From Cycas panzhihuaensis (lineage: Eukaryota > Plantae > Cycadophyta): 64,000 nucleotides of DNA. The stretch covers positions 139,321,741 to 139,385,740 of the forward strand of contig CM041465.1 in assembly GCA_023213395.1 (NCBI GenBank), written 5' to 3'. Within the stretch, counting starts at the first letter, position 1; every line of letters starts with the position of its first letter. Shown one piece after another: positions 9,660 through 53,906 of the stretch. The notes beneath the pieces are model-generated. The model saw nothing but the letters and a program-made list of their open reading frames with translations. It searched no databases and was not told where the DNA came from. A program made the translations under genes and the position numbers.

Positions 9660-10633
9660 CTATTATATCTTTTAGGTAGCTCTAGGGTATAAGTTATTAA
9701 TATAACTATTAATAGCTGGGAGAACCTACTTTGCACCCTCAATGACAAATTGGCACAAGCTTAAAATAGGATGAAATAGGAGATTGATCAATACCATTTA
9801 GAGTACTTATTAACCAAAGGAGATATGATCTTCTTGAACTTCTAAACTTACAAATAGACATTATTAAAGCATAAAGGTATAAACTTGTTTCAAAATTATA
9901 TGGGCTATATTATATGATATAAAAGATCAAAAAAATTTCTTATAAGTTGGATCCACCTCTATCCTCCAAGATATATTTAGTTTTATATTTGTCTTATTTG
10001 AAGAAGGTTTTGGGATAATAGATGCACATGTAATCATCACTGCCTGAGTCGGATGATGAAGGATTTATCATGCTTATGCCAAAAGTAATCCTATAATGTC
10101 AAATGTGCCAACTTTAAAAGCATGATACTATAGAAGTTTTAATGTAATGGCAAGGCATGTAATGAAAAGATGCAATATGGAAACCTCTTCACAAACTCTA
10201 ATAATAGTTTTCAACATTCAAGTCCCAAAGGAAATACTCTTCAAAGATAGAAGGCATATTAGGACCATTGTGTCATAATTATCTATTATATGGAGGCATG
10301 TAATACTCATAATATATAAAGCATTGTAAATGTCATATAACTCGTGTATTTATTTTTGTATATAATGAATCATCTTACATGCACGATTTAATAATATAAT
10401 TGAGATAAGTCTCTCATTTATATTTGTAATTTTTATAGTCTTAAGGATATCTTTGAATCTCTTGTAATTGAGCTTTGCTCTTAAGGAGGTTACCCCTTTG
10501 AAGAAACCTATGATTGTAAGTGATTCCTTATGAATATTAACATACTCATGATTTTGGTAATCCTATGATTTGATTTATATTTTTTAATATATTATTATTT
10601 TTAATATTCATAATTATAAGTAGTATGATATTA
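9660..10633 (+). mobile_element. 3' end of a Ty3/gypsy element (integrase C-terminus/chromodomain remnant, PPT, 3' LTR 10257-10633)
   Basis: ~9840-10020 reads KLVSKLYGLY...SYKLDPPLSSKIYLVLYLSYLKKVLG, against the consensus KLAPKFYGPY...AYKLDLP..SKIHPVFHVS.LKK. 10257-10633 aligns with the LTR at 31672-32035. Confidence 0.8.
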
Positions 10634-17096: not shown

Positions 17097-20000
17097 AAAA
17101 ACTCTTAAAAGAAAAAACATTTTAATAAATCAAAATAAGAACAAGATGTTTCTTAAAAGCACTAAAAAATGTTGTAAATGACAACATAGAATAGGCTCTA
17201 AAAATTTAAAAAAATGTGTAGCTATATAACTATCCTACCCAAGTATTAAACATTGGGATATGATAACACAATGTTGGTTTTAGATGGAGGCATTGATAGT
17301 TGACCTAACAATGAATAAAGAATATATAATGAGGTAAGTATAAGATAAACAATGAGACACATAAGAGATGAAGTATGCACATGGATGAAGCACAATAAAT
17401 TGGGATGAATGGGCAACCTTTAAATTATTAAAAAAAATTAGGTATATACTTATAGAATATCTGAGCACATGTGAGAACTCGTAAGGTCAACCTTTGTGCG
17501 CTAGTACACTTATCAAAGTGGTACATATATTAATGTAACCATGAATTTAAAAATCAAATAATATATGAGAGAATATGAATGGTATTAGAATGTGATTGGA
17601 TATTTTATCCAATAGGCTTTATAAAATAACCAATCTTAGAGAAGGCTAATAGGTAGACTATAGTATCAAGAATGAATGGCAAAACATTAATTCAAATTAT
17701 TATTTCTAGTGGCATATTTTAAAACAATTAAATACATTCTATTTATCCTATTGTGGACCACCATGGGAGTTTTATAAACAATGCTTTTAGTATTATAGAA
17801 GAATCTGGGACCTATTATAAGAATAGAATTTAAAATCATAGAATAGTGACTTGTAGTAAGGTCATGGAGCTAAATAACCAATTCACTTAGTGTTAATAAA
17901 GTATTTTGAGTCTTTGTTAATCATGTAATATAAGATACTTGATCATTTATGAAAGGCAATATGAATGCAAATATATCTAATTTTTTATTTATAGTTGAGT
18001 AAACCAACCATATGTTATGATGGGTCTTTTAATAGTAATAATTCCATTCTATTTATACTTTTCATATTATTATTAGTTTTAGATGAATTAATGTATTAAT
18101 ATAATTTATCAATTATTATTCTACTTTTTTGTTACGTAGATACATATGTTTTTTTATTTTTATTTATTTATTTAGTTTTGTGTATTCATGAGAGAGAGAG
18201 AGGTATTTAGGTATAGGTAAAAATCAAAACTTACAAGAAACCTAAGGTAACTAATATGGTTAAGTAAATTAACTAAGCACTAAAGTGAAGATTAGCTAGA
18301 AAGAAATTTAGATTTCAAAATCAAGGAATGTAACTCAAATCAACTAGTAAAGTAAGTAGTGTTTCAATTTAAAAGTAATAGGTATTAGATAGTAATTATG
18401 GCTATGGACAAGTTTTATGGCAAGGCCAGACATAGGTAATTAAATAAATTTATGAATATTTAAACTAGTTATAGGGAAAAAAGAAATTCAAATTCAAAAA
18501 ATAAGCTCATTCTGCTCTTAGAGGGTATAGACTAAGAGAATGTCTCAAAATAATAAACCTAATGATAATGGTACTTTATATGCCACTATTTAAATACTAA
18601 TATGTGTCATTTAGTATATGCTGACTCCTTTGTCATGGCAGTTCTACAACATGCCCTTCCCTTTTAAGAGAAAAGCTATACCCAAAAAGCTCAAGATAGT
18701 GATCAACAAACTCTTAGGACTACCAAGTCACATCCTCTAATAACAATCCCTTTTACTTAATGAGGTATCCTATCATTATTTTGGATCAAAGTCTCTTACA
18801 TTATATCTCGAGGATGATCTATGGTTCTAAGTGTAGAAGTTCAAAGCATGGAGTAAACTATTTGAGAAGAATAGACCAATGTTACTTAGATAAAAAGGAT
18901 TTGACTAAATTACAAATAACATCTCATTCTCATAAAATCTTTTTAGTTTATAATACATGATAAGCGCTTATGTATAATCCTAAAAGGAATATTAATTTCT
19001 TTATGATTGACACATTTGAGGTGGGTGGTGTAACCCCCAATGACTCACCAAACTTGCATTCTAAAGAATTAATAATCATTAGAATATAATAATAAAGTGG
19101 ACAGGCTCAAAACCTAAGTTATGAGTAACATAACCATTAATTATCAACACTCCTAAGTAATTTTTATTACATTTATTCTAATATGTAAACCATCATTAAA
19201 TGTCTAAAATATATCACATGTCAATGATTTGGTAAAGATGTTAACTAATTGTTCTCCTATTGGCTTGTACATCATTTTAATCACTCCATTTTGAATCACT
19301 TTATAAGTAAAATCATAATACACTTAATATGTTTTATGTGAGCATATAACATAAAGTTCTTTAAAATCTTTTATGTATTCTAATTATCACAGTATAATAT
19401 AGTTGGTTCTAATTGATATAGTTCCATGTCCTTCTGAATATATCATGAACAAATGGATTTAGTAGTTGTTGTAATTACAAGCTTGTAGTTTGTTTCAATC
19501 AATGATAAAATAACATTTGATTACTTTTTTATTACAACTAATTCTAAACTAAAACAGTATATAAAAGTCAAACTTCTACTTTTTATGCATCTAGAATAAT
19601 CATAATCTATAAATCATGTTAACTTGAAGTTATCATTATGCATGAATTCAAGTCCACATTGAATAGTTTCATTTTGTTATATTAGCTTAGTTTATATTTT
19701 ATGTGGTAAAGTTATAATACATATTTACGCAATTAATTTATTATGATATTGGTATTTTATAGTTGATCCCATACATAGCTAACTTATGTCTTATAAATAC
19801 ATATTCAATGCATTATATTGTAATATGAATTATTCTTATTGTCTTAATCCAAATTAATGTACCTTAAGGGTACCGTTGTGATTTTGTGTTTGTTGTTTCT
19901 TTCTATTCGTGCTTTGTTATTTTCTATTACTTTTATTTTTCTACATGGTATTAGAGTAAATTTACATTTCTAACATGGTGTTAGAGCCAAGGTATGTTGA

Positions 20001-22295
20001 AACTAGCTAGTAGAACCATCATTTCTTTGTACCTTTGTAATTTGTTATACATATTATATTAAAGGACCCTTGATGTAATTTAATCATATTTGATATTAAG
20101 GTTAGGTCTACCTCATTTGCTATTAAGTCAGCCTATCAAATATCATGTAATATTAGTGGATGGGCTATATATTACACCTCATACCATTGTATCATGTAAT
20201 ATTCTGATGTTAATGCAAAAGCTCTGCCTATGAGACAGTTGTATGTGGGGACAAATTCACCCATAACATTGCCATTTACTTTGTTTTATCTATTTTGCAT
20301 ACTTCTTTATTCACTATAGCTATTTTACTTAATATTTATTGATTAGTCCACATGTATAACAGATCCTAATACTCTTAACATGGTATTACAGCTAAATGTG
20401 CCTGATTTAGTTTTTTTTGAAGTTATTTTGATAATTAGAGTTTTGTTTACTTATTTTTCTTTAAGTTTTTTTATCAAAAATCTAAATATTATACAATCTT
20501 AAAGTAAAGAGTAGCTAGTTCTAGTTGACTCCAACCTCGTGCAATAATTTATATACCTATTTGATCTCATATGGGGTTTGGCTCCAAGTTGTTAAAGAAA
20601 AATAAATGAAAAAACATATTTTTCATTTATTTCAACCATAAAGTAGGTCGTTTTTCTTTGTTGGAGAATCATCTATTCTTTCGATAGCCTTGAACCCACT
20701 TATATAGTCCATTAAAGGAGATTTAAAGTGTTTTTAGGTAGTTTTTGACTTCATTTTGCTCTGGTGGGCCCATGCAAACCCTTAGACTTTGGGAGCTTTA
20801 TTCTCCTCTGTACGAGATCCTTTTTTAAAAATCCCATTTCTATTCAAAAATTCCACTTCTATTTGATCCCTCTAGTCATTACATCCCTTCCTCTAATATT
20901 TCATTATAATCTAAGGTCATTTGATTCCCCGTTAGGGCTCTTCACCTCTCCATGGGTTGCCCTGTTCATGCGTTGGTTGTGCAACTTCATGAGAAACTTC
21001 TTTCATAAAAAATCTTTTAATTTTTCATTATGATTCAACTTTAGAAACTTAAATTAAGTTAAATTTAATTTTTGGTTGAAATTTAGGCCTTTATCCCCTA
21101 GATCCAGTCATTTTAAGTCACCATATGATCCTCTTTTGTCTTAAAAGGGAAAACTCCAAAGAAGATTAGACTATATTTGACTCTTTATACATAATAAAAA
21201 ATCATTTAGCTACTTTTGATAAATTTTTAGATCTATAAGACCCTAGTTGCATCACTGAGTGGTCACGTGCATCCAACAGGCAGCCACAAGCCAATTTTAG
21301 AAGGGGCTTCACCCCATCCTCACTTTGATTTTTAGCATAAAGATATACATATATTATTTCTACCATATCTTTTCAATCATATGTCTATTTCATGAACCAT
21401 CTAGATTATCATAAAATAGATTCAGAGCTCTACAACTTAGAATTAAATTAAGCTAGATTTGGAGCCAATTTGCTAGAGATGCAATTTGCTAATTTTGGCC
21501 TTTATGGTTAAGGGTTTTGAGCCTTATTTCTCAAGTTTTGAAGGCTTATTTCAGTTTCTTTGAGGTTCTTTTGCTTGCTTAGGCCATGTCTAATCTTTTT
21601 TAGCTATTTAATCTTGATTTTTGAGGCCAATTAGTGCATGGTATTACTTCTTATGTAGGTGTTACTCTTAGGAGGTTGATAAAGTTCACTCTTAAGCTTA
21701 GCCTATCAAAGAGCTTTCTAAACCTACCTTCGTCCTTTCAATTTGCTTTATTTCATCTTTATTTCATTTATTGCTTAAAAAATAAACCTCTTATTTGTAA
21801 AAAACTAACATTAAACATCAATTTCTCACATTAAAAGGATAACTCCAAAATTAAATCCTCTTTTCCAGTCTTGCAAGGGGAATGATTAAGACCCCTAAAG
21901 TTTCCACCCTATATATGCCATTAGTGTACTTTAAGTTATTAAGGAAACTATTAGTTATTAGGTGTATTAGGTGGAAGACTAAGGCAAAGACCCTATCTTT
22001 TTAGAGTTCAGAGACCAAACTAGACTTAGGGAGGTGAGTGCCTTGGTTAGATAAGTTCTCACCACTAGAACTGTTGTTTGGCATAAAACTAGTATAGGTG
22101 GGGAAACAAATTATGGGGGTATTAAGACCACCTTTATAGCCCACACACTGAGGTATATCGAGCCTTTGAGCTTACGTATTGATAAATTAGGTCCCTAGTT
22201 TGCCACTTGTGGGCAGGTGACACTAAACAGGATAATAATCAAGAACTTTCCTAAAGATCCTTCACCTTAGAATTCTAGATTAGACACCACTTAAC

Positions 22296-25200
22296 CTTGT
22301 TATTTAATCTCACCAACTAGAACAAGGTTAACTTTCAGAGTTAGTACATAGAAAACATTATCTAAGTATTATTATTCTTCATTTGACATGATAATTGGTA
22401 CTTTTCTAGCTCCTATGGCCTCTAAATCGATGGCATCCCCAATGGTGACATTTTGATTCGCTTCCCATATTTCAAAGGACCATTCTAACCTTCTAGTCAT
22501 GTGTCTTGATGTATTAAAATCAATGAACTAGATATCTTATACATCAAAACCTATTTTGTATACTATAACAAATAATCGTTTTGAAATCTCACCATGTGTG
22601 TTCTTTATTATATCTAAAATATAACCATGTTGCCTAGGTGGTCATTATTATCATCATTGTTACCTTTATCATTGGGGTTGATGTTATTATTATGAACATT
22701 ACTAATGCTGCCATTCTTAATAATCCTTTTTTATGTGACCCAATTTTCTAAAATAATAATACTTTTGCTTATATTATCCCTTTGAAGCTCTTGCCTTATC
22801 CTTCTTAACTACAAGTTCAAAAAACATATTTTTCTTTAAAATAAATGGATTTTTTTAATTTGATTTAGATGGCAATGCTTCAGACAATTCACCATGAATA
22901 TATTTAAACTTTTGCTCATTTTCCATAAGTAGTGATTCTAAAAAACTAATTATTAGAGTGGACAATTTATCTAACAAAGTTATCAAGAATTATCTCACCT
23001 ATAATCACTAATTGATCTTGAATTGATCTCGCATGTCATATGTCATCCATCACATTCCTAGTCATCTTCAAGTTGTATAGTTGACTCTACAGCTTTAGGG
23101 CTCCTATGTCATCTTTATACTCAAATATGTTCATAGTCATGTCCCATATTTATTTTAGTCTAATAGCTTCCTTGATATGTAAGATGATGCTGCCACCGAT
23201 TAACATGCTAAGAAACCTAAATATGATCTATATCTTTAATTAATATTCAATATTAAAAGTAGCAATAATAGTCAATTTAGTTGCAGATGCAGTAATCTCT
23301 TTAGTAGCTTTACCCTTAACTGACTTATCTACATAGTTCTAGAGCTCATTCAAATGAAAAAACTTAAATATATAATGCTTCTAAACAATGTAATTCTCAA
23401 GACCTGCAAGTCTTTTTGTGACTATTCTCATTATACCACCTTAATTAGATATTTTAAGTAAAAAGTAAATAAAAAAAAAGTTAAAAAGAGGATAAACAAG
23501 CATAGAAATTAAAAATAAAAGTTATAAAATTCTTCAATCTATATGTAGGTAGTTGGTATGAGTGGATTTGCTACCTCAGGCTACTCACAAGTAGCTAAAA
23601 TATCACAAAAAATATAAAATTTTATTTTTTTTACTAGAAAATTATACAAAAATGTAGTATGTGACTACTACCAAATCATAGATCTAAAAAGATTAGGCAC
23701 TATGGTATATTTATTTTCTCAAAACAAATATTTAATTGTAAAAAAATATTCTTAATACCCAAATAACCATATAACTAGGGCTAGTAGGTAGTGAGTTTAG
23801 TCGCAAACCTCACAATTAAACCTAATGCAATTTAGTTTCATATAAATATTAGAAAACATAAATACTTTTAACCCAATGTTTTATATAGAATATTCCCTAT
23901 AAAATATTCTCCAAAGAGGTATAGGTGACAAATGAAGCCCTTTAAAAAATATGCTTTTTCACTAAAATGGAGTTGTTTCATCCAAAAAGATTGATATCAC
24001 TACATTGTCAGACTATTAATGATTAATTTGATAGGTCATTGTTAGTACTTTTATGGATAATTTCATCATTGGGTATGTAAAAAATGATTGTCTTCCTTGT
24101 CCTCCTTGTTCAAACTTTAACCTTCATTGGGCTTCTATTTCAAAACTTACAATATGTAATATGAAGTTCCCTTTTTTACACTTAGTTCTTATACTATGAC
24201 ATCTAGTTTTATGTATGTGACCCTCAAATGAGCATATTACTCACTCATTATAATGTATATTTATGTGTTGGCATCTTTTGGCCTTCCAATGAGCATCGCA
24301 CTATAAATATGTGATTGTGTTAAGCCTTCACCACATGTTAGAGGACTATCATATTAAAAGGTAAGGTAGGTTAAGTAGGTTAAGGTTAGGAGTATTTAAT
24401 AATAGAAAAAATATATAATTAGTTAGCTTAGTGGTAAAATAATATAATAATAGGGTGATCCTTCTATATATATAATACCCTACTCATTGTACTATTATGT
24501 TGATAAATATAATCTCATTGAGCCTCATTTCATTGTCTTTTAGTTCTCTTTTGGTGCTCTTCATATCCATCTTCTACTCTATCCATCTCTACAATTTTCT
24601 ACTTTTCTTATTCTTCTTCACATATTATTGTGATAACAAGTATTACCCTATTATACCTGGTTTCAGAGCAAGATTATTTGGTAATTTTTTTTTTCTACTA
24701 CCTTAATGCAAGGTTTTGAAGGCATATCCAAGAGTATAAATGCTAAAATTTTTAAAAAACAATGGCAAATTTGACCTAAATAGATCATTCTATAAACTTT
24801 GAGCAGTTACACTATAGATTTTAAGGTGAAAGTATAAAAACCATATGAGTTTTAATTTTTTCCTATTTTTTATCACTAATTTTATAATCAAATCTACTAC
24901 CTCGACTTTAAATGACCATAACTTTAGCTACAAGTATCTAAATGACCTCAAATATTTTTTGATCTCATGAATTTTGAAGTCTATTTTCCAATGGAAGTGG
25001 TCTTAAGTTGATCAATACTTAGAACAAAAGTAAACAATATCTTATTAGAAGGTACTATTATAGTCCTAAAACTTTACGTAAACCTCCTTAAAATAAGTAT
25101 ATCTTTTGATACAAACATCAAAATTTAATTTTATTTGTACCATAGGAACCCTAATTTAGAGACCACTATTTTAGATTATATTTTATTAACTTTAAAACTA

Positions 25201-28200
25201 TTATTTATTAGATATTTAAAATTAAATTAAATTATTTTATTTTGCAAAGGTTTATTCTAGTATTTCTTTTTGTATTATTTTAGGCCATTCGGACTTTGGC
25301 TTCTATCTCATTGCTCTTAAGGCTATAAAAAGAGAAAAAGAATGGACCTAAGGGATTCTATAAATATACTCTAATATTATGAAACAATGGGTCTTAGTGA
25401 TTGGTTCTTTGACTTTGAGCAATTCTTTTTCAATTATAGTGATGACCTTGACCTCTCCAACTTTGAGATGGATAGACACATTTGATTTTATGATTAGGTT
25501 ACCACTTTTTAATAGGTCTTTGAATATTATTCTAAAGTTTATTACTTCAAACGTGACTATCCCAAGATTCTATTTATTATGTAATACTTAGATGTGGATC
25601 TTCATAGAAAGATTTAGGTATGGTATGACTCACTTTCAGAACTAGATTGGATATCCTTCAAGATGGAACTTTAGAGAGAAATAAGAGCCTGCATACTTAT
25701 TGAAGCTCTCGTAGAAGTAGTTTTGGAGAACTATGATTACTCAACTAAAGAGGACGAAGAGGACCAAGATCACCCAAATAAAGAAAAAAGTGGAAAAAAT
25801 GATGATTGAGGATGAGCATATTGAAGTCCCTTTCTCTGTTTGTACCATATAATGATAAGAACGATTAGGTCTTTATCACTAAACTATATTATTTTAGTCT
25901 TAATGGTTTTGTCACTTTTAATGATTGGTTTGTATCCATGCTCACATACTTTGAAGAGGTCAACTTGACAAAGTATCGCAAGCTTTGTCTAGGTTTCAGC
26001 AATTGGAAGGTCCCCTGAAATTATGGGAACGAGGGTGGTGTCAAAATGCTTTTAGGCCAAATTAGGATCTCTTCATTTTTATACTTCGCCAATAGATTGA
26101 AGCACTAATTCCTAACCATAGTAACCTTTTGGAATGAGAGGCCAAAGAAAAAGAAGAAGAAGAGGAAAAGGAAGAAAAAAAAAAAGATGACATAGGGGTA
26201 ACTGTATCTTTTCAATCCCCTATATTTGAGATCTATTTTTCTTTGGATTGGTAGGTTGAAATATCTTCACTTGAAAGGATAATAATCAAATTGACACCAT
26301 CAATATTTAGGTTATAGGAGCATTTTAGTCCTCATTTTTATAGACCCACAATTTACTACACCATAGGCCCTCATTTTTTTGATAATGATATCCATCCAGA
26401 AGGGCCACATTTTTTTAGTGTATGTTCATGCTTAATGAAAGATGTATATATGTTAATAAGTGTAGTGATAATTTCTATATCATGGCACAAGGACAATGTA
26501 TCTCTGAGATAACATTTACGCAACGACAGGTGGTGGACACATGTATTTTTATATTAAGATGCTTGAAATTAAAGCATCTAAGGGGGGAGGGTATGCAGTG
26601 AGCCTTCACCACATGTTAGAGGATTATCATGTTAAGAGGTTAAGTAGATTAAATAAGTTAAGATTAAGAGTATTTAATAATAGGAAAAATATATGATTGG
26701 TTAACTTAGCAATAAAATAATATAATAATGGGGTGATTCTTCTATATATACGCCACCATATTCATTATAATATTATGTTGATGAATATAATCTTATTAGA
26801 GTTTACTTCAGTGCCCTGCGATTCTCTTTTAGTGCTCTTCACATCCATCTTTCACTTCATCCATCTCCATAATTTTTGGTTCCTCTTGCTCTTCTTGATA
26901 TATTGTTGTAGTAACATGTTTTGCCCCATTACAACAATTACTGTTTCATATAGTAATGCTTGAATGCTTACTTACCCATTGTTTTCCATCTAAGTTCCTC
27001 TTCATGATATTCCTCTTCAATGGCCATTCTCCTTCTTGTGGTGTTTAATCCATTATTATGGCATTAATGGTGTCCTTTACTTTCCTATTATGGATTTTAC
27101 CTACAGGTCAATGGGCAGTGTTGTTGTGATTTAATGGTGGGGTATCGATCCTAGGTGAAGGCATTGTAATTTCCTTTTTTGATCAACTGATTCAATTAAT
27201 CAAAACTCACAGTAGGTCACCATTCAGTTTACAAGTTGCCAATTCTATTGTGCAAGTTGCTATGAAAAGCTACACAATAGATAGGCTAGTAAAACATTAT
27301 TTGACTATAACCTATAGTCATAAACCTTAGGGTATGCAATTTAGAATATTCTACTTTTAATAAAAGCCAACTCTAAAGGTTAAAACAATCTTTTAATACG
27401 CATTTCAACATTGACTTTTTAATGGAGTCTAGTAGCCCCTTTTCAAAGATTTATAAAATTGATTTTTAATACCTTCTTTTATCATTTTCATCACTATTTT
27501 TCCACTTTAAATGGTAGATTTATCATTATGTCAGCATAGCCCTTCAATAAAGTCTAGCACAATATCTTCATTGGCCATCGCATTGTTTCTAGTAGCCCCT
27601 TTAGTTTTCAACGATTTTAATAAGAGGATCATTTAACAACAATCCATAGCAATATAACAGAGTTTGTCAATATGAGGTATATTTACAACTTGAGATTTCT
27701 TCAACAACAATTGAATGGAGGTCCATTCATGACAGATCAAAATGGTCCAATAACTCAACAAAGTCTTCCTACCTGCATGCATAACTAGCCATCCATAGAA
27801 GTTATTCCCTAATCACACTCATAGACCACAATTGTCTTACCCTTTCTTACTTGTATTTCAATACTCATCACTCACACATTGCTCTCATTTGGACATATTT
27901 AACTCACTTATACATGTAGAGCAATCTTTTTCCCTCGTCTCATCTTGCATTCATTATATTTGTATTAGACCTCCATATATACTACTCCCTAGCTTTCTTT
28001 CAAACCTAAATTATTTGTACCATCTATCCCTTTACTTTGCATATATCTCTTTGTTGTATCCATCTCTATAGAATACCCATCTTACCATCTATCCATCATT
28101 CTCCATCTCTTTAGTATCAACACCTCGTATGTATCTTTCTCCAATTTTATCGGTACCCTAAATCATTCATGTCACCTATTGCCTACACTTCAACTTTCAT

Positions 28201-28422
28201 TCTTGACACATCCCTGTCATACACTTTTATATCTTAATCTCGCTCATCTCTGTTATTTCTCATTAACTTCATTCCACTCTCTATTTTTTGTATATCTCTC
28301 TTTGACATAATTGTCATTTGTATTAAATATTTGTAACATATCTTAAACCTTATTCCTTAGCCTTGTCGTATTAATACTCTATGTCTGTTACTACCTCTCG
28401 ATCTCCTCCATAAGCCACCCTC
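22296..28422 (+). repeat. Segmental duplication, copy 2 (partner 3228-9659), including second copies of the copia gag fragment (~22296-23450) and the non-autonomous LTR element (24316-26933)
   Basis: Colinear identity with 3228-9659. The ORF-track entries are duplicated (6615/25379, 7968/26733, 5730/24497). Confidence 0.97.
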
Positions 28423-28829
28423 TACTCCATATCGTTTATTACCCATTTACCATTATATAATTACTTTAGTCACATTCCACTTCAAGCATAGCCTTTCAAT
28501 CCTTATTTTTGCCCTAATCCCCAATACTTCTTACCTCCTAATCTCTTTTAGAACTACATTCTTATCTATTACAATATCATGTCATTATAAACCCTCGCAC
28601 TTTATCTCTATTTTTGACATACCCCTCCTGTGTGTCTCGATCTAAGCTTATTTTCCTATGATGCTGACAAACTTGATTCATGTTTATTGCGCACTCTTCC
28701 TATATGTCTCCATTCATTGCCATGCGACTTCAACTATATTCTCTATTCCTTATGCCTTTTTCAGCCCAACCTATGCCCCCATCTCCAAGGTAATTCTTAT
28801 CTTCAAGTGCAAAACTCCATGGGCATGAT

Positions 28830-29423
28830 ATAGAGGCAAGTTCCAAGATATGAGATAGTGCTAATCCCCAAAACACAGGGCCCACGATATACTGCGTGGA
28901 AAATGCTCTGCAAGAGCTATAAAGGAAATGGTGTCATCACAAATAGGAAGATGGCACATACGTATAGTACCTAGAAGACAACATAGAGATGGCACTAGCT
29001 CCAGCGATGTATTGGCTATAGCAAGTGGTAGATTGGAGAGGTGTGCATCATTTCTCCCACATTTTGTGTGCAAAGTATTCATAAAAGGGGAGGAGTGTTG
29101 TGGATCCAAATGGCAACATAAAACAAGATCATGAAAGAGACCTTAAGAAGTTACAAAATTCAATAAATGATAGAAGGAGCTAGTGGGATGACAAAGTGTC
29201 TTTAAGGAGGAAAGAATTGTAACGATCCCAAGACAATTTGAGAGAAGATGGATACTACTACGTGAAGTATATTTTAATAATATTTTATTATTATGAGAAG
29301 CTAGTGTTAGTGTTATAAATGGAGATATACAAAGAGATGTGTAGAGATTTAATTTTTGTTAATTGCATTTTATATGAGGGTGCATTTCTTTGTGAATATT
29401 GCTGCTATCTGAATTTTGCTACA
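28830..29423 (+). mobile_element. Highly decayed Ty3/gypsy 3' fragment (integrase remnant, PPT, short LTR ~29218-29423)
   Basis: A remnant resembling SAYHPQTDG...CLENYLR lies at ~28850-28920. GACAAAGTGTCTTTAAGGAGGAAAGAA is followed by TGTAACG at 29218, a typical gypsy 3' end plus PPT. A candidate LTR end TGCTACA is at 29423. Confidence 0.5.
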
Positions 29424-29652
29424 ATTCGTATTTGGGTGCGAAGAAATGAGAAGAAAAATCATCTTCTTCTAATTCACGTTACGTTTGTGTTTATGATGTA
29501 ATAACCCAAGAAAAATAAAGAAGATTATGACTGGAAAAGAGCAGAGACAGAGGAGTCGTCCAAGTGAGAAGTAAAATGGAGTTGAGGGGTTGCAAACGAT
29601 ATTGGGTAGAGATCAACGAAGGGTTGAGGGTTGAAAACCTAATCTTATGAGG

Positions 29653-29726
29653 CGCTAGAAGGAGGGCTTGAACCTCCGACCTTGTGGTTAACAGCCACAT
29701 GCTCTAACCAACTGAGCTATTCCAGC
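29653..29726 (-). tRNA. tRNA-Asn(GTT): tRNA-Asn (anticodon GTT), nuclear plant type
   Basis: The minus strand reads GCTGGAATAGCTCAGTTGGTTAGAGCATGTGGCTGTTAACCACAAGGTCGGAGGTTCAAGCCCTCCTTCTAGCG. This folds into a complete cloverleaf with anticodon arm TGTGG-CT-GTT-AA-CCACA and A and B boxes. A T4 run lies downstream (AAAA at 29634-29637). Confidence 0.97.
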
Positions 29727-30097
29727 TTTTCGGGGGCGAGATTTCAGGTACCGCGTTCAAGTCTGTACGGATATTATTTTCAAATGAACTCAGAATCAGA
29801 TCACGTATGTTTTGGGAATTAGAAGCATATGCAATAATTTTGTGGAGTGAAGCGGTAGTATTGAAGTAAGAGGTGAGAATACCAAGTTTGGGGCATTTTA
29901 TTGATTGGACAAGTTACCATAAAATATTTGTCTTACCACAATATTAATGTTGTGTCGTGTTGATATCTGTAACACAAGTCACGCAGCTGTTATCTGGTTA
30001 CCCTCAAACAAGCCATGCCATGCAATTCAGTGTGTGCAGGCCTTCCTGGCGAACGAATGGCCGGTGGATGGTTACTCGCTCGCATTATAACCCTGTT

Positions 30098-30169
30098 GGT
30101 TCCATGGTCTAGTGGTGAGGACATTGGACTCTGAATCCAGTAACCCGAGTTCAAATCTCGGTGGAACCT
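30098..30169 (+). tRNA. tRNA-Gln(CTG): tRNA-Gln (anticodon CTG), nuclear plant type
   Basis: The sequence is GGTTCCATGGTCTAGTGGTGAGGACATTGGACTCTGAATCCAGTAACCCGAGTTCAAATCTCGGTGGAACCT, with acceptor stem GGTTCCA/TGGAACC, anticodon CTG and T-arm CCGAG-TTCAAAT-CTCGG. Confidence 0.97.
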
Positions 30170-30172
30170 TGG

Positions 30173-30176
30173 TTTT
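30173..30176 (+). terminator. Pol III oligo-T terminator of tRNA-Gln
   Basis: TTTT starts 4 nt after the discriminator base. Confidence 0.6.
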
Positions 30177-30271
30177 ATCAAACTAGCTGGCTCAAACCTG
30201 GACACATCACTGCCATGAGAAACTACAATAATAAGTTACATGAAATGAAAACATAGTTTTAAGAGTACAGC

Positions 30272-30660
30272 GGTTGCAAACCCTTGACATGTATAGCAAC
30301 AACAATATTAAAAAATTTATTAGATTCAAAAATCTAGACATCATATTGTACCACATTACAGGATGAATTAGAATTCCCTCTCCTTTCCGTATGAGGCATA
30401 AACATAGTACATGGTTGCAAACCCTTGACATGTGTAGCAACAACAATATTAAAAAATTTATTAGATTCAACTAGAATGGAGCTTGATATACTCTACCAGG
30501 TATATTGTACCACATTACAGGATGAATTAGAATTCCCTCTCCTTTCCGTATGAGGCATAAACATAGTACATGGTTGCAAACCCTTGACATGTGTAGCAAC
30601 AACAATATTAAAAAATTTATTAGATTCAACTAGAATGGAGCTTGATATACTCTACCAGGT
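30272..30660 (+). repeat. 159-bp tandem duplication (30343-30501, 30502-30660) plus a third 58-bp partial copy (30272-30329)
   Basis: The two full units are identical by eye. The core GGTTGCAAACCCTTGACATGT(A/G)TAGCAACAACAATATTAAAAAATTTATTAGATTCAA occurs three times. Confidence 0.95.
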
Positions 30661-31671
30661 ATTCGACAAATCAATAAGAAAAACACATGTTGGCTCTTTT
30701 ACATGTTTATAGTTTCTTGAAGAAATATAGAAAGAAGGCCTCGCAAACTCAAAGAAAATATGAGTAGCTCATTACAACAATGTAGATCCCTAAAAATGAA
30801 CGCCAATCCTATTGAGGGACATACAAGAACATTCCATCATTTAATCGACCCACTTTGTATGAGCTCCATAACAAAAATTATTTTTGTCTCAATAAAAGCA
30901 ACACCTAATGGATAAAACCATTATCAACATGATATTTGATAATTACCCCCAAAATAAATTATCTGAATAATAATCATAGAAAATGAGGACATGTCGCCCA
31001 TAAACAACCAAGATCTAAAAATAATGATCTTAAGAAGGAGTGCACTTATGGCCCTAGTACAAAGCTTTGAGGGTGAAGCTTTTAAAGAAGGGAGGGCATG
31101 TTATGGCCTAACTTGACGTCAACCACAAACCATAATTACATATGTGTATTTACAATATGGCATAGGGATTAGCATGGTATGTTATTATCTTCCCTTGGCA
31201 TTGGTTCTTCATCGAATAACTTTACTTTGAGATAGGTCCCTAAGGCATCCAATAGTGCCAACAACACTACATCATATTATTTGGTAAAACATAGGGAAAA
31301 TGGAGCTATTGTTAAGCTATGCTTATTTGTTTGTTTTTCACCATTGACGACAACTCGGTGCACCAAGTTTGACCAAGGAACTGGAAGATATAGATGTGTG
31401 ATAGAACTATAAACTATATTACCTAAGTGTGATAGGGCACTCTACTCTTATGTGGGCTTATGGGTTAAGAATGAGGGCATGCTTCACATATTGAATCCTA
31501 TAAAGACCCAATGGACTAAAGCTACCCAAGAACCATAATATCATACCTCACTAGGTGATAATCAAATATTCATGAGATTACGCTACATCCTGATCCTCAC
31601 TTACATTGTACATAGGGATTATATCTTGGACAATGGTGTCTATGGGGATAGGTATAGGAAATAAAGATGAT

Positions 31672-34600
31672 TATTAGGACCCTCATGTTCTAACCATCTA
31701 TTATATAAAGCTATGTATTAGAATTAATACATAAAGCATTGTAGTAGTCATTATATATCTCATGTGCTTATTTTTGTATGAAATGAATTATCCCACAAAC
31801 ACCACTCAATAGCATGACTAAGATACACCTTTCCTTTATACTTGTACCCTTTATTATCTTAAAGATATCCTTGAATATCTTATAATTGATGTTTGCCCCC
31901 TTAATGGGACTTATAGTTGCAAGTGATTCCTTATGAATATCAACAGTTTGGTGATTTGGTCATCTTGTGATTTGAGCTATAGCTTTATATACATTGATAT
32001 TTTTAACATTTGTAGTTGTAGGTAGTATCGTATCAAGTGGCATCACAACACTTTTTAGGGCCATATTCTACTGTAGTGATTTTTAGTAGCTTAATGTAAC
32101 TAACCATTATATGCTCTCACCTCGCCCTTATGGGATCTTGGTGATAAAAAAGTGGAAAAAATAGTAGGATATTAACCTCATGCCTATATTTCTCCTCTCT
32201 TTTTATTTTTATTTTTTATAGTGGTGTCTAAGTTAGAAACCCTATTTTGGTAGTTTTCAAAAATCATAGAGTTCTTGTTATTGTCTAAGTATGCTTCGTG
32301 ATAAGCTAATGTATAAAGTGAGATGTGAAAGAAACCAATACCTAGGCCTTAGACAACATATATATGTGGAGTCAATCCTCCACATACCTTTTGCATATAT
32401 AGGAAGACCCCCCTAGGCTAAGAGATACCTAGTTATAAGAAGTATGAGGCAACCATTAGTTGTTTGTAACCTCCAGTACATTGGTTAATAGTTAATACTA
32501 GGAAGTTACGCCCTACGTAGACCTAGAAGATAGATAACATGACTACAAGTATGATAATTCTCCATAGTTAGTGCCTTGAGATACTGGGTTAATTCACCAT
32601 TATTGATTGAGAAGTGTATGAGAGAGCCTGTAGGCTAGATACTCCTTCAACTAGAAATTTTTTATGCCATGGCTATGAACAAATCTAGACATGCTTTAAA
32701 AGTTATCCAAAATACTAAAACCCTTGATCTGGCTATACCTGGGTAGCGAATTGTAGGAGATTTGGAAACTACAATAGGGAATATCTTGTAAATAGTCATG
32801 AATAGATTTCGACCTACTTGGACAATGACTAAAAGTACTATAACTATTAATCAAGATAGACTGAGGCTATGATCTAATAGAAATTTTAAAACTACAAGAA
32901 GAAATATTTTAAAGATTGTTAAGAATTTGGTAAATATGAAAACACAAAAGTTCAAGGTAAAAAAGCTTAACTTTTAGTCACTTATTCTAAATTTATCCTC
33001 TCGTTGAGCTGATCATTTTAATATAGATCTTTGATAACTTGTTTAGACAACCCATAGAAGCTAATATGGCTAGTGTTCATAGATCCTAAAACCTCTGCTT
33101 AGAGAAAATAGATGAAGATAGTAAAACAATCCAAGTAACACGATCGACCATACTCCAACTACTATCTAAATTAGATGCATTAAACTGAATTAACAAACTT
33201 AATAATAGGTTGACTTTATTAAATGTCAAATATAATACCATGAACTTACAAATACAGTAAGGCAAGCACTCTACCATAGAACGAGGTACCAATACAAGCC
33301 AACAATCTTTGAATAGACCCTAGGCTAGTGGCACATTCCATCCCCTTAACTTAATTTTTCCTAAATTTAATGGGAAAAATTTGGCTAGTTGGTTATATAA
33401 AGTAGGACATTATTTCTCTATCCATCAGATGCCTGGAGACTAAACAATTTCCACAACATCATTTCACCTACAACGTGAGGTAATCTATTTGTATTAATGG
33501 CTAGGAAAAAAATGTGGTACCTCATGTGGGCCAAATTTAGTAAATACTTATCATATGATTTGGACCAAGTAAACATGAAGACTTCATAGAGTTCTTAATT
33601 AAATTAAAACAAACTCATTCTATCTGCAAGTATCAAACATAATTTGAAATTTTAACAAATCAAACAATAGGGCTTGAATTCAAACTTTTGACAAATCAAA
33701 CAATAGGGCTTGGCAAGGCTTTCTTCAAGAGTTATTTTATTAGTAGCTTAAAAGAAGACATTCATGTAGAAGTTAAAAAGTTTAAGCCCGCTAGTTTTAC
33801 AGACATCGTAAGGTTAGCAAAGTTAGTAAAACCATTTAAAACTCTATAATTTTAACCCCCATAACTAGCTCAACCAAACCTAGCCCTAGCCATTAGAGAA
33901 CCATCTACCAAGGAATTAAGTCATGAAGAGATGATTGCTTATAGAGTAAGGGAGCTTTGTTATAACTATGATAATAAATATATACCTAATCATAAATGTT
34001 TAGAATAAAAACTCTATTTATTAGATGTTAAGGAACTTTGATAATAAATATATACCTAAAATTTTAGTGCACATACTAGCTAGAATTACCACACCCCAAA
34101 CTATAAAGGTATTAGGATATTTCAAGGGACATCATCTAATTATTATCATTGACTTGGGTAGCACCCATAATTTTATTGATCATAGTATAACCAAATAGAT
34201 AGGTTATTATATTTACCTACTCAATAGCTTCAAGGTAATGATAACTAATAAAGGAACATTGGCTTGGAAGGGCAAGTGTCTAAACATCAAGTTATCTATG
34301 GGGAAGTACACTATGAAACCAATCATGTTCACACTCTAATCAAGGGGTCATGACGTGGTCTTAGGGGCTTAATGGCTTCATAGATTAAGACCCATCTTAT
34401 GGGATTTCACGGAATTATGGATGAAGTTTACAATTAACAACCAATAATACACCTTAGTGGGCATGATGATTAGTCCTACCTAAATTGTTAGCTGCCACCA
34501 AATGGAGAAATTATTAAAAAGGGGTCCCTAGGGAGTGATGTCTCAACTATGTATAATGCAAATGCCAAAAACAATAAACTCAAAAGTTGAACATAATGTG

Positions 34601-34735
34601 AGATACAAATACCCTTATAAACTTACAATTAGTCCTAAAAGAGTAGGACCCAATGTTTACTACTCCTTATGGACTATTGCCCTAGCACTCATATGACCAT
34701 GCTATATAATTAATTTAAGGTAATTCACTACCTAA
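31672..34735 (+). mobile_element. 5' half of a Ty3/gypsy element (5' LTR 31672-32035, PBS, gag, protease), cut just before RT
   Basis: PBS-like TGGCATCAC at 32038. Gag reads LIFPKFNGKNLASWLYKVGHYF (~33350) and protease IIDLGSTHNFID (~34144-34180). DVVLGA*WL..LRPILWDF follows, and the fragment ends at YDHAI*LI*GNSLPN. Confidence 0.88.
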
Positions 34736-36195
34736 TGTTGGAATAATGTCCACATTGGGGCGATTACCCATATTGAGGAGATTACTCACATTGAGACAAT
34801 AACCCATATCATGGGAAATATTTTGTGTCAGTATATTGTCAAGTATTTGCCAATACCAGGCAGTGATGGGCCTTGAGAGGTGTGCCAAATCCTCTCAATC
34901 CTGACTATATTTATAGGGGGTTTGAAGATCTTACTATTTTTCAACATCACCTTCCTTATTGATTATTGGTTATCCTTTCTTGCATGCATTATTTCCTATC
35001 CTCTTTGCTCTTGTCCTCTAATTCTATCATTTAGTATCAAAGTTGCATTTAAATCTCTCGCTTCTTGTTACATCTAGGTTGCTGCTTTTCAATCTCTTGC
35101 TTCCAATCTTGTGTCTCATAGTTTGTCCTTTTAAGTAGTCTATGTCTGGTAGGTGATGATATTCTATGCCTGAGTTTGGGTTTATCTTTATGTAGTGAAG
35201 TGTGGTCTATCCTAAGTAGTGTACTCCAAGCAATATGTGCTTGTACTTGCTAACCACTTAGATTTCCATATTTGTAGGCTTTTTAAAAGTACATCACAAG
35301 TTTGAGTATCTATCTGCATTTTGTATTTGTGTTAGTCAAAACATGCCTCTTATGCATCTAGTATTTTGCCTCTGCATTCAAAGTCTACATTGAGATACAT
35401 TCTATTAATTTAATTTTGCATTACTTGCAACTTCATTTTTAACTTGCTAAAGGTAGTTTGTTGTAATTGTAATCATCTTATTGAGGGTATTTGGATCATA
35501 ATCTCAACCTTGCAGTATGGCGAGCCTACAAGATAGCTTTTTTAAAATCTACATTAATCTCAGCGAGTCAAGTTGGGTCATTATCTATAGAGTCAACTAT
35601 GAGAACACTCATTTTTTTATGCTCCTTTTCTCGCATGTTAGGAATTATATTTTATCCTTTATTCTGGCTTACAATAGTCTGCACACTCAATGTTTACATC
35701 CTCGTTTATATGTAGTCTTGCATCTGACTTACCAGTCCATCATCCACCTTTGCATAAAATATTTACATTTTCCCTTCAATTGATCAAATTATAATCTTTG
35801 CATTTCTATTTAATCAGAAAACATTGTTTTAATATTTATTTTTTATTCTCTGTTTACACATACTGCAAGGAAAGTTATATTTATGCCTCCATTTGATATC
35901 ATGCATCCCTTTTTTCATGCATATATTTTTTGCCCTATGAGTATTAATATTCATCTCTGGCTTTACTCTACGAAAGTGGTTAGGTATGAAGTTGTTGTTT
36001 CTATCGTCTCTTTGACTATGGATGCCTTTTGACCATTGGTGGTAGCTCTTACTACTCTGCTATTCTCTCTACATTGTTTATCACTCAAACCTACAAAGAG
36101 ATTGGCTACTCCCATATAGATTTACTTCTCATCTCACTTCAATCCATTAATTGCTACACATAATGTTGCTCAAGTATTTTGAGGTCATGCCTCAT
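34736..36195 (+). mobile_element. Truncated LTR element (LTR ~34736-35029, PBS-like site, leader) inserted in the gypsy pol
   Basis: Starts TGTTGG exactly where the gypsy frame stops. ...CTATCA is followed by TAGTATCAAAGT, a decayed PBS at 35032-35043. No partner LTR is in the window. Confidence 0.6.
34751..34809 (+). repeat. 18-bp minisatellite (3.3 copies) inside the LTR
   Basis: Units read CACATTGGGGCGATTACC / CATATTGAGGAGATTACT / CACATTGAGACAATAACC / CATAT. Confidence 0.75.
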
Positions 36196-36247
36196 TTAAC
36201 ATACCTCTCTCCAAGACTCCATCAATATAAAGAGATTTTCTCAAATT

Positions 36248-39200
36248 ATGATAAATACCATTAAACTCAATGGCATAAATAACTTCATACCATGGAAGAA
36301 GCAAGTTTAAAACTTACTCATTATGAACAAATTTTGGGCCTATATTAATAGGGACATACCCCTTCCTGTACCTACACGAGACCCTAATGATTGCACTAAA
36401 ATAATCCCACCAGATCCTATAGCCTTAGTAAACTTCAAAGCTAAGGACAACATTGCATTATCCTTCCTCCATTTGGCTTTTGAAGACCAAGTGGATTAAA
36501 GTATTAAAACTGCTCAAACATCTCATGAGACATGGAATATGCTTCATGCCCTCTTTGAGAGAAAAGATAAATCTAGATCTTTAACACTCAAATCTCATCT
36601 TTTTATAATGTCTTTTGCTAGAAATATTACTTACCATTTGACCAAAGTGAAAAAAATTAGAAATTAGTTGATTATCCTTAGTGAGCGACTTTCTAATCAT
36701 AATTTGATCTCTAGTATTATTAACATTATACTTATTGAATATAACTTCTTTATATCTAAGCTATATGATAATTATTCCAAGATGGACTTTATAACCTTTG
36801 AGGGATTCTTACTTCAAGAGGAGAATATACTTAACTAAGTAGGGGTGACATTAACATCTGACTCAACTCTTACCTTTATAGCCCAAAACTCAGAAAAGGG
36901 TAAGTCTGTTAATAGAGCAACTCAACAACTTAGTTAGCAATAAGACCTAACTTAACACTTTGACTCTCTTTATATATCACAAGAGTCATATCAATAGCCA
37001 ACTCAATAACAACAACATCTAATTGGCATCTCCAACTCCTCCTATCCAACTTAAGCAGCCTCAACAGTCTTAGCACCAACCATGGGGACAATCTCAAAAG
37101 AATCAATAGGGCAAACCAAATGTCACTTACATCTATTATAATAAAATTGGATATCTAGCTATTGAATGTAGGAGATGACAAGCTAATTTACAACTCTTAC
37201 AGAATTAAAGGAGCCAAGTATATGGGCCATATTATCAATAACCACCCCCCATCTATTAATAAGGAAAACCCTCATATCATTAAGGAGGTCTTAGTTATAC
37301 TCAACAAAGACAAAGACTCTCTTATCAACAATGAGAACCATGCCCTCATCAAGGAGCCTCCTTTCTGTAATAAGAATGGCCTCTTTTATAATATAGAGGC
37401 CTCTATTATCAATAAGGTGTCCCTATTTAAAAATAAGGATGCCCTTTTTATCCCCAAGGGGGGGGCAGCATATCAACCTCAAGGTTAATTCTACCGACAA
37501 AATTAGAATCCTAGACCCATATAAGGACAAAGACTTCATAATAGGTAACAATTCTCCAATAGGAATTAAAGGAATTGATAGAATAATCAACAACAAGGAG
37601 GTAATATGGGAGATAGTCAGGACTCATCCTTCCATAACTTATTCTTTATAACACTTTCATCACAACTTGATGAGACTACATGGCTCCTTGATTCTAGTGC
37701 AACGAGACACATGACAGGTTTATAAAAGATGTTGGAAGAGACCCAACTAATCAATACTCAAATTGTCACATTTAGGGATAAATTGACTTACAATGTGACC
37801 ACTATTGGTAAGGAACTAATAACATTGGAGGACTCTAATATTAGATACCATATTAGTAATGTGTTTTCTGTACCTAGTATGAAGATCAACTTACTTTCTA
37901 TTAGCCAAATAAACAAGCATAACTTAGATGTCCTCTTTAGCCAAGGCATTTATAGAATTACAAACCATGCAATAAGTAGACTTGTGGCTATAAGACATGA
38001 AGATGGTGGCTTATAAAATATGGATGGTGTCCCCCTTACCACTACTCTACAACATGAATCTTGTTCAATATCCAACATAACTTAATCTAATAAGGGGAAG
38101 GATGTAATTGATGAAGAGTCCCCTTGCATAGAAGAACTATGAGAATACTCTTATTTAAAGGATGATGCCATCACAAATAGCTCTAAATACCACCTATGGA
38201 ATTAATGTCTGGGTCATTTGAACATGCAAAACTTGAACCTCATGTTTAGGCTACAAATGGTATATGGCTTACCTAAAATAAAGAGATTCCATAACATATG
38301 TGAGGTCTGCCTAAAGCAAGAGTAGCAAAGAGAAAAATTCCCTTCTAAGAATGCATGGAGAGCTTCACAACCATTAGAGTTGGTCCACTTTGACATTTGT
38401 GGCCCTATGTCTATCCAATCTCTCAATGGAAGTTAGTATTTTATTACCTTCATAGATAGATTCAAAGAGTTCAAAACTACTGTAGAAAATGAAAGTGGAA
38501 TAATAATCAAGATCCTTAGACTAGATAATTGTGGTGAGTATATTTTAAATTAGTTCAATAATTTTTATAAGGAACATGACATCCAATGTCAGTTATATGC
38601 TTCTCATATACCTCAGTAAAATGGTGTAGCTAAAAGGATGAATCAGACTTTAATCAATAAAAGAAAAGCCATGCTTAGTGCTACTAACCTTGCTACTAGA
38701 TTTTGGGCTGATACCATTACCATTACTACTTACCTAACCTATATAAGTCCCATAATTATGGTTAGGAATATTACTCCCAAAGAAGCTTGGTCAAGTCAGA
38801 AAGCATATGTAGCACACTTGAAGATCTTTGGATGCATAACATATAATCATAACCTAAAGGATAACTAAAAGAAGCTTAATGACAAGAGCCTTAAGTGCAT
38901 CTTCCTTGGCTATATACTTAGTTATAAATCCTATAAAGTATTTGATATAATTAGTAACCAAGATTACATGACATGAGATGCAATATTTACAAAAGAACTA
39001 TAGGAACTAATACCTCCTCAACCTCGAATTATAATATCAAAAGAAATTGGTGCATCTTAAGTGACTCTTGGATAAATTTTAGAGCCACCAGTACTAGATT
39101 CATCATACTCCCTAGGTCCTTCATTAGTTATAGTAGCATCTTCGTCATGCACTCAAGCAATTATAACCTTGCTCCTAATCTCAATTAATGATCTTCAAGT

Positions 39201-53255: not shown

Positions 53256-53430
<175 letters not shown>

Positions 53431-53789: not shown

Positions 53790-53906
<117 letters not shown>

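Follow-up and report, generated by a model that had tools for sequence, protein, structure and literature searches.

A 14-kb block of genomic DNA with two tRNA genes inside a dead copia element of Cycas panzhihuaensis, probably a break-repair patch

How did about 14 kb of genomic DNA with two tRNA genes come to lie inside an old copia retrotransposon of the cycad Cycas panzhihuaensis? The question arose in a preliminary description of a window of 64,000 nucleotides (GenBank assembly GCA_023213395.1, contig CM041465.1, positions 139,321,741 to 139,385,740 of the forward strand), which is the whole stretch analysed here. That description proposed that a fragment of 13.9 kb had been captured at a staggered 5-bp cut marked by TTAAC on both sides, with almost nothing lost at the target, and named integrase capture and templated break repair as possible routes.

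The host element and the left border of the block

The host (the layer-3 copia) is a single plus-strand element at 19995-41268, with its two halves in the correct order. Its LTRs (5', 19995-20380; 3', 40886-41268) have TG..CA termini, share 81% identity and are flanked by AGGTA on the left and AGGTG on the right, while the primer-binding site, TGGTATTACAGC, lies directly 3' of the 5' LTR. The primer-binding site and leader (20381-22295) are homologous until the junction to the leader (55928-56915) of a sister copia on the same strand, which served as the uninterrupted reference (55928-59641) and whose positions 56916-56966 are unmatched in the host. The decayed gag-pol of the host (36253-40885) resumes on the far side of the block and comprises gag (36377-36835), integrase (38194-39009) and reverse transcriptase (39301-40364). 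According to public contig sets, the family is present in very high copy in related genomes; four metagenome loci that shared a 20-mer with it were set aside as chance hits, none being window-like. The host is an old, dead element that was broken at 22295/22296 by foreign DNA.

Comparison with the sister copia revealed that leader homology persists until 22293-22295, with approximately 60% identity (13-16 of 25 columns), and that the left TTAAC (22291-22295, plus strand) forms the final 5 nt of demonstrable copia leader, which reads ...CACCACTTAAC at the junction. The block starts exactly at 22296, the first base of a 97-99% duplicate of window positions 3228-9674. This start falls within a minus-strand copia gag fragment (22296-23533; 64-69% related to the gag of the layer-1 copia at 47439-48730), in agreement with the earlier claim that the block begins in the middle of a copia coding sequence. 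The left border is exact, because the duplicate begins at 22296 while in the other copy this gag fragment extends a further 53 bp to the left. The joint is blunt and microhomology is absent there.

The block termini, which read CTTGTT...GCCTCAT, were inspected for the ends of known transposon classes. The best local score for terminal inverted repeats at the two ends was 11, compared to 9.9 +/- 1.8 in shuffles (p = 0.31), and self-comparison of the window showed no direct LTR pair bounding the block. No TG..CA termini were found in any of the six registers permitted by TTAAC, and the block ends had no primer-binding site, polypurine tract or poly-A, nor Helitron ends (5'-TC...CTRR-3') when both strands were read. 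With a tandem repeat, LTRs and Pol III genes that retain their flanking DNA, the content is not that of an intron-less RNA-derived insert. Inverted-repeat, Helitron, LTR-end and poly-A readings of the block were consequently rejected on end inspection, in accordance with the preliminary description, which had noted the lack of TG..CA ends, inverted repeats and poly-A. Both ends are arbitrary points, the left one in a gag fragment continued in the other copy and the right one in DNA with no match.

These results bear on the idea that the block is cargo of an unrecognised mobile element, whether Pack-MULE-like, Helitron-like or another DNA transposon. Such an origin could be read from an imperfect 9-mer at the two borders, CCACTTAAC and TCATTTAAC, which agree at 7 of 9 positions; this likeness is within chance, and two mismatches in 9 nt are too many for an insertion only 1.6-3% old. 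As the inverted repeats and TC...CTRR ends are missing and the left end is a random point in a gag fragment that continues elsewhere, this origin is extremely improbable.

Content of the block and its partial duplicate

The first part of the block, B' (22296-28438, plus strand), is the 97-99% duplicate, truncated at its left end in the copia gag fragment. It contains a small, old LTR element (24323-26931, plus strand; 331-bp LTRs, 80% alike) that is found in the other copy at 5556-8166, and it continues into a C-rich, G-poor tract on the same strand recognised by its GC skew (28439-28838). Downstream lie a tRNA-Asn (GTT) gene on the minus strand (29651-29726) and a tRNA-Gln (CTG) gene on the plus strand (30098-30169), both of nuclear type. 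Both were detected by ARAGORN and Rfam (71.9 and 68.3 bits, respectively), with a canonical cloverleaf and a TTTT run at most 20 nt downstream, and are predicted to be intact, working-looking genes, as had been claimed. They are followed by a 159-bp tandem repeat of about 2.5 copies (30264-30662) and a plus-strand repeat (31672-32036) that is 71% like 10257-10634 and is possibly a piece of gypsy LTR.

The half gypsy of the preliminary description proved to be a plus-strand stump with gag and aspartic protease only (33327-34600), ending where reverse transcriptase should begin; it was detected only by tblastn with library hits, in which nothing matched past the protease. The right end of the block (34601-36195), which the preliminary description had assigned to the leader of another element, gave no match by within-window comparison or Pfam. 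Its sequence from 34600 to 35200 is moderately repeated in related genomes, while 35200-36199 was absent or uncovered in the contig sets compared. Pfam returned nothing for 20 ORF pieces of the block, and a homologous-protein search with the block ORF 35502-35780 and the sister gag ORF 57045-57548 gave no matches.

The duplicate had been placed at 3228-9659, and the alignment extended it to 3228-9674. This first copy, B (plus strand), lies 19 kb upstream as part of a partial copy, A-B, of the donor stretch. Its left end is ancestral, with the copia gag running on to 3175, while its right end is cut at 9659-9674. The two copies differ by 101 substitutions (1.6% divergence), rising from 0.6% in the centre to 2.5-3% at the ends. 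Compared to the 19% divergence between the host LTRs, this places the insertion much later: judged by divergence, the block is much younger than its host. A retained copy is present in the window for the first 6.1 kb of the 13.96 kb, and the window holds no source for the other 7.8 kb.

The GC skew of -0.55 to -0.68 runs through 28438 in the block and stops abruptly at 9674/9675 in the first copy. Since this tract is unbroken from B' into the following part, C, the two arrived together, and its continuity shows that the adjacency of B' and C is ancestral in the block. Each copy thus looks ancestral at one end only, so that the window in its present state contains no intact donor A-B-C. Three other origins of the resulting A-B-X-B'-C-Y layout were discarded, namely simple tandem duplication, insertion of a circularly permuted eccDNA, and gene conversion that homogenised old paralogues, as each needs extra coincidences or predicts flank similarity that is absent. 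A patch-type origin also carries a cost here: with the first copy cut at 9659-9674, it has to invoke a third locus or a deletion that came later.

The right border and the TTAAC pair

The preliminary description had the copia resume at a second TTAAC (36196-36200, plus strand). Both TTAAC copies are present; the right one lies within DNA that is not demonstrably copia. The sequence after it begins ATACCTCTCTCCAAGAC... (36201 onward) and reads ATACCTCTC..., which differs from the gag start conserved in the family. Identity to the sister copia over 36201-36250 is random (7-8 of 25 columns) and returns to approximately 70% (17-19 of 25 columns) only from 36251. The global alignment score of the 36201-36252 region against the sister was 1.0, while shuffles gave 2.8 +/- 1.5; an alignment of this stretch to the sister and family made by eye looked plausible, proved no better than shuffles and was dropped.

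The family alignment, which the preliminary description had itself named as the test against its reading, pointed the same way. The consensus was drawn from low-depth Logan contig sets, with four public runs compared with 31000-36999. Family contigs are 85-99% like the host gag, and every one of them loses this likeness at 36252-36259. Upstream of the break these contigs have in common a gag start that agrees with the sister (p = 0.004) and is missing from the host copy; the consensus reaches 37 nt upstream of 36259, leaving 36201-36221 uncovered. The outcome speaks against a target duplication, with resumption at 36251-36259 and away from 36196-36200. The 52 nt at 36201-36252 stand where the family has a conserved leader end and gag start, with random-level identity to both the sister and the family consensus, and a local template for them was not found, as no word of at least 13 nt recurs within the window. 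Because sister identity and family contigs resume only at 36251-36259, about 51 bp of copia, including the gag start, is, by alignment, replaced by approximately 13.96 kb (22296-36252). The claim that almost nothing was lost at a staggered 5-bp cut was not supported.

What remains in favour of that cut is the spacing. Removal of 22296-36200 leaves a single TTAAC and a spacing of about 101 bp compared to 100 bp in the sister (within 1-3 bp); this observation of the preliminary description is real, although it turned out to be the sole support for a clean target duplication. A test for 4-6 bp target-site duplications returned the same picture, namely TTAAC on both sides and a restored spacing, with the right copy followed by 50 nt of random identity. 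TTAAC occurs at 0.15% of positions. By chance it would turn up no more than 3 bp to either side of the position that restores the length with a probability of about 1%, and somewhere in the 57 nt that do not align with a probability of about 8%. On these alignments the pair is most likely a chance match. The restored spacing and single TTAAC, at a chance of about 1%, are left without explanation if the block is a repair patch.

If the TTAAC pair were instead a true 5-bp target-site duplication, a staggered cut would have been filled in on both sides and a linear or circular-derived fragment of 13.9 kb ligated into it, the cut coming from an aborted LTR-integrase attack or two nearby nicks; 36201-36252 would then be native leader of a divergent sub-lineage, or would have been scrambled later. 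Besides the exact TTAAC at both borders and the spacing, the length of 5 bp is that of the duplication of the host copia (AGGTA/AGGTG), and in summaries of the Wicker-type model breaks arise during target-duplication fill-in (PMC3445842, PMC3503983). Against this stand the 50 nt of random identity, from which the conserved gag start is missing despite a neighbouring gag that is 85-99% family-like, and the missing TG..CA in all six registers permitted by the repeat. The published model, as summarised there, also places the causing TE beside the filler, and neither border here has a TE end. A true duplication is therefore unlikely. More doubtful still is its stronger form, in which arbitrary-ended, non-transposon DNA of 13.9 kb would have entered an integrase-type staggered cut, through an aborted and patched integration or an integrase acting without LTR ends. 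Positive evidence for integrase capture is missing, as the block ends lack an LTR pair, a primer-binding site and, in all six registers, TG/CA; if real, this would be a route by which host genes (Pol III genes in this case) move with no transposon sequence involved.

A single replicative template-switching event (FoSTeS/MMBIR-like) might also have made all three young joints (9659-9674/9675, 22295/22296 and 36195-36252/36253), with TTAAC as the return microhomology. This is consistent with the two copies each being ancestral at one end, with a third young joint at 9659-9674 and a 15-nt patch of imperfect similarity there, and with the rise in duplicate divergence toward its ends. The left joint has no microhomology, however, and TTAAC is not at a demonstrable joint. 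The timing of the joint at 9674 is not tied to the insertion, and the A-B-X-B'-C-Y layout still demands the loss of intervening DNA, which makes a single event of this kind rather unlikely.

The low-depth contig sets contained no sequence spanning either junction and no empty site. An assembly artefact, either a chimeric join or a haplotype switch within the near-identical duplicate, would agree with the lack of a public contig over 36000-36199 in the four sets, with the best four runs each holding 0.56 of 16 sampled words across the left junction (200-nt query), and with the central part of the duplicate diverging so little, which could reflect cross-polishing. A false join, however, would not lead back into the copia about 50 bp or less from where it left, with the LTR pairs of layers 2 and 3 matching around it, and holes are expected when contig sets of low depth represent a very large genome. 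An artefact is accordingly very unlikely.

Probable break repair and its relation to known systems

The block is probably a double-strand-break patch, made of copied filler DNA with a small target deletion. The features that speak for this are a copy whose source is kept (for 6.1 of 13.96 kb), arbitrary ends and the loss of target bases. The chromosome would have broken at the leader/gag boundary of the old, dead copia, and ectopic genomic DNA of approximately 13.96 kb (22296-36252) would have patched the break, at the cost of about 51 bp of copia that included the gag start. The patch would be a copy of an ordinary TE-rich stretch of host DNA, A-B-C, holding the copia gag fragment, the small LTR element, the C-rich tract, the two tRNA genes, the tandem repeat, the gypsy stump and the unmatched DNA. 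We infer a copy-and-paste pathway, which may have been synthesis-dependent strand annealing or filler DNA synthesis, perhaps with switches of template, and completed by end joining, and a donor that would have lain nearby. Templated break repair, one of the two routes named earlier, is the best reading of the evidence, and the main observation of the preliminary description was supported: multi-kb non-transposon DNA was placed in an old copia, so that two intact tRNA genes came to lie within retrotransposons nested three layers deep.

Break repair would thus shift kilobases, including working-looking tRNA genes, to other sites of a plant genome that is large and TE-rich. The overlapping copies, each ancestral at one end, would imply a local donor that was later deleted or a third locus that seeded repeated patches. 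For genome scans the locus advises caution: in DNA of 70% A+T, a perfect 5-nt repeat combined with a length match can mimic a target-site duplication, and family members must be aligned over the insertion site before an integrase or transposase is proposed.

The block resembles an LTR-retrotransposon integrase insertion in its 5-nt direct repeat of the length typical of that superfamily. It differs from one in having no LTRs, TG..CA, primer-binding site or polypurine tract, and in a right repeat that is not demonstrably target. Vaughn and Bennetzen reportedly found in 2014 that patch-mediated staggered breaks give tandem duplications around insertions in rice. Such a process would explain a short duplication around captured non-TE DNA without a transposase; it is relevant only if TTAAC is a true duplication, and the family alignment argues against that.

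Break repair in plants with copied filler or foreign fragments is often templated in cis and often accompanied by target deletions (PMC7156093, PMC4423477). The block shares with published fillers a target deletion of about 51 bp coupled to an insertion, a template that apparently lay in cis at a distance of 19 kb, and a blunt or microhomology joint. Fillers are mostly short, averaging 13 bp at rice excision sites and typically 1-123 bp (PMC4423477); unlike these, the present one measures about 14 kb, at the large end of filler sizes, and includes 52 nt that have neither a primer repeat nor a template in the window. In the model of Wicker, Buchmann and Keller (2010), as summarised in later accounts (PMC3445842, PMC3503983), gaps at breaks are patched by copied foreign fragments. 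The present case matches what these summaries describe in that a multi-kb non-TE copy fills a break, the source is kept, the context is TE-rich and genes (for tRNAs in this case) end up in a non-collinear position. In the TE-linked cases given there, the causing TE lies beside the filler within one target duplication, whereas here no TE end abuts the block and the duplication is doubtful; compared with those cases, the recipient here is the interior of three nested retrotransposons, and the cargo is mostly dead TE DNA and two tRNA genes and not protein genes. Break-repair patching of plant DNA has thus already been described, and on the best reading the block is a natural example of it that reaches about 14 kb.

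Structure of the host copia and its setting

The 64 kb is a nest of decayed retrotransposons with 70% A+T, and contains just one open reading frame of at least 120 amino acids. The host copia (19995-41268) is bounded by LTRs at 19995-20380 and 40886-41268, which are 81% identical, have TG..CA ends and are flanked by the 5-mers AGGTA and AGGTG. A copia-type primer-binding site (TGGTATTACAGC) directly follows the 5' LTR, and similarities to gag, integrase and reverse transcriptase appear in the correct order at 36377-40364. Just upstream of the host copia stands the 5' member of an outer, layer-2 LTR pair (19675-19972 and 44166-44475; 76% alike), and this pair in turn interrupts a minus-strand, layer-1 copia (pol and gag at 44443-48730, pol end at 19187-19554). 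The LTR pair, the gag-pol order and the outer nesting thus indicate that the host copia is one element in two parts, and the three nested layers reported in the preliminary description are real.

The host copia insertion is located about 20 nt past the layer-2 5' LTR (19973-19994), within or just beyond its primer-binding site (TGGTGTTAGAGCC). Layer-1 copia is also interrupted by a short G+C-rich stretch (47195-47381; one frame reads GAVPPLNLSRGVLRGAGAPLGRG). The interruption coincides precisely with the point (47382 / 3175) at which layer-1 copia ceases to resemble the copia fragment in copy 1, the upstream counterpart of the duplicate in the block. At 53140-53480 and 53760-53990, runs of HT, IY and LS in the open reading frame listing reflect extended microsatellites of the types (AC)n/(AT)n and (AG)n/(AT)n.

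Contents and left border of the block

The foreign block inside the host copia starts at 22296 with a minus-strand copia gag fragment (22296-23533), followed by a 2.6-kb LTR element that is present in both copies (24323-26931; LTRs 80% alike) and a C-rich, G-poor tract (about 27800-28838). Two nuclear-type tRNA genes, each with a TTTT run downstream, were found next: tRNA-Asn(GTT) at 29651-29726 on the minus strand (72 bits) and tRNA-Gln(CTG) at 30098-30169 on the plus strand (68 bits). They are followed by a 159-bp tandem repeat (30264-30662), a repeat 71% like 10257-10634 (31672-32036) and a gypsy gag-protease stump without reverse transcriptase (33327-34600), while the 1.6 kb of 34601-36195 had no match in any comparison made. 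The upstream duplicate, the tRNA pair and the partial gypsy of the earlier account were all recovered. Its view that the block is not a transposon was also borne out: the ends showed no terminal inverted repeats (p=0.31), bounding LTRs, TG..CA, Helitron or poly-A features, and a transposon identity was rejected.

Self-comparison showed that 22296-23715 is 96.8% identical to 3228-4645, and 23709-28438 is 98.7% identical to 4941-9674. The likeness begins exactly at 22296, the preceding base being unlike in the two copies. In copy 1 (3228-9674) the minus-strand gag fragment, recognized by homology to layer-1 copia, extends 53 bp further left, and thus the left end of the block is an arbitrary cut within this fragment rather than an element terminus. 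On the host side, the leader can be aligned with that of the uninterrupted sister copia (55928-56915) as far as 22293-22295, each 25 columns holding 13-16 matches.

Right border and the TTAAC repeats

The preliminary description proposed a clean paste between direct repeats of TTAAC, the second at 36196-36200. Excision of 22296-36200 brings back the sister spacing, with 54 vs 51 nt between BLAST alignment ends, and the landmarks used earlier agree (about 101 vs 100 bp). However, the 50 nt after the second TTAAC show 7-8 matches per 25 columns with the sister, the random level for this composition, and identity rises to 17-19 per 25 columns from 36251 on. The global alignment of 36201-36252 with sister 56916-56966 scored 1.0, as compared to 2.8 +/- 1.5 for shuffles, and no template for these 52 nt was found within the window.

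Independent evidence was obtained by aligning public contigs to the window; these were low-depth sets, in none of which 36000-36199 was covered. The family that includes the host copia gag is present at very high copy number, contig depths adding up to thousands at 36200-36600; in related genomes, depth was 600-4400 over 36200-36999 vs 0-80 in adjoining block DNA. For family copies, two protein searches were blank and a metagenome scan gave chance matches only. The family contigs are 85-99% like the host copia in gag, but in three runs the likeness ended at 36252-36259. Upstream of that break the family consensus (TTTTAAACATGGCATCACAAATGCTCCTTTCCAACAA) is the gag start, which the sister fits (p=0.004) and the host copia does not (p=0.6). 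Over 37 homologous nt, about 5 mismatches would be expected at the neighbouring identity of about 87%, whereas the observed identity is random.

The random-level 50 nt and the contig break together indicate that demonstrable copia resumes at 36251-36259, leaving the second TTAAC outside it, and that about 51 bp (sister 56916-56966) are missing from the host copia. The homology thus resumes away from 36196-36200, the outcome of family alignment that the preliminary description had itself named as refuting a TTAAC duplication. A real target duplication is still retained as an alternative, since TTAAC would fall by chance at the length-restoring position with a frequency of only about 1% (about 8% for anywhere in the unaligned 57 nt); given the random 50 nt past the right TTAAC and the absence of the family gag start from the host copia, it is considered unlikely.

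Origin, age and proposed break-repair mechanism of the insertion

GC skew is strongly negative (-0.55 to -0.68) over the final 600 bp of the duplicate and stays so without interruption for a further 400 bp of sequence unique to the block, whereas in copy 1 the skew ends abruptly at 9674/9675. The original neighbouring sequence thus seems to be preserved to the right of the duplicate in the block, and to its left in copy 1. The source would have been a stretch A-B-C, of which copy 1 represents A-B plus other DNA, and the block B'-C. No copia pol was found left of 3175, which suggests that copy 1, too, may be fragmentary. A third young joint lies at 9659-9675, where composition shifts sharply and copy 1 ends in a 15-nt imperfectly similar patch (CTATTATATCTTTTA vs TACTCCATATCGTTTA in the block); this joint marks either a donor deletion breakpoint or the place where a further patched fragment ends. 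Possibly the locus 19 kb upstream served as donor, C being lost later by deletion at 9659-9674; both copies could also derive from a third locus, or a single multi-switch replicative event could have produced all three joints.

Between copy 1 and B', 101 substitutions were counted over about 6.15 kb (1.6%), as compared to 19% between the host copia LTRs, and thus the insertion is several-fold younger than its host. Divergence varies along the duplicate, from 0.6% in the central 3.5 kb to 2.5-3% in the 1.5 kb at either side, a pattern suggestive of subsequent gene conversion across the 19 kb that separates the copies, or of assembly polishing. A 295-bp MITE-like insert (4646-4940; terminal inverted repeats GAAAAGAG.../...CCCTTTTC, 7-nt flanking direct repeat ATTTATT) occurs in copy 1 only and is missing at 23708/23709 in the block. 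As the copies are otherwise 97-99% alike, its restriction to one of them indicates that it arrived, or was excised precisely, after duplication, and so that its family was recently active.

The arbitrary ends, the nearby retained source, the blunt left joint and the small target deletion correspond to the anatomy expected if a break in the host copia had been repaired using copied filler DNA, and the 52 nt of orphan sequence and the absence of transposon features likewise point to break repair. The structure makes an assembly artefact unlikely, since a false join would not lead back, within about 50 bp, into the very element it had left. For integrase capture, as raised in the preliminary description, no positive evidence was obtained, and this reading, like the clean 5-bp duplication from which it follows, is not supported. 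Without that exotic part, the block is regarded as a genuine and well-resolved case of a process already known. In plants, fillers are described as products of 3'-end-primed synthesis, for which the template usually lies in cis, and of subsequent end joining (PMC7156093), and deletions with foreign filler are common at rice transposon excision sites (PMC4423477). In the model of Wicker et al. (2010), as summarised in PMC3445842 and PMC3503983, gene-sized foreign fragments patch breaks, some of which occur during TE insertion. Compared with such filler or patch repair, the present case is of the same kind, but large (about 14 kb).
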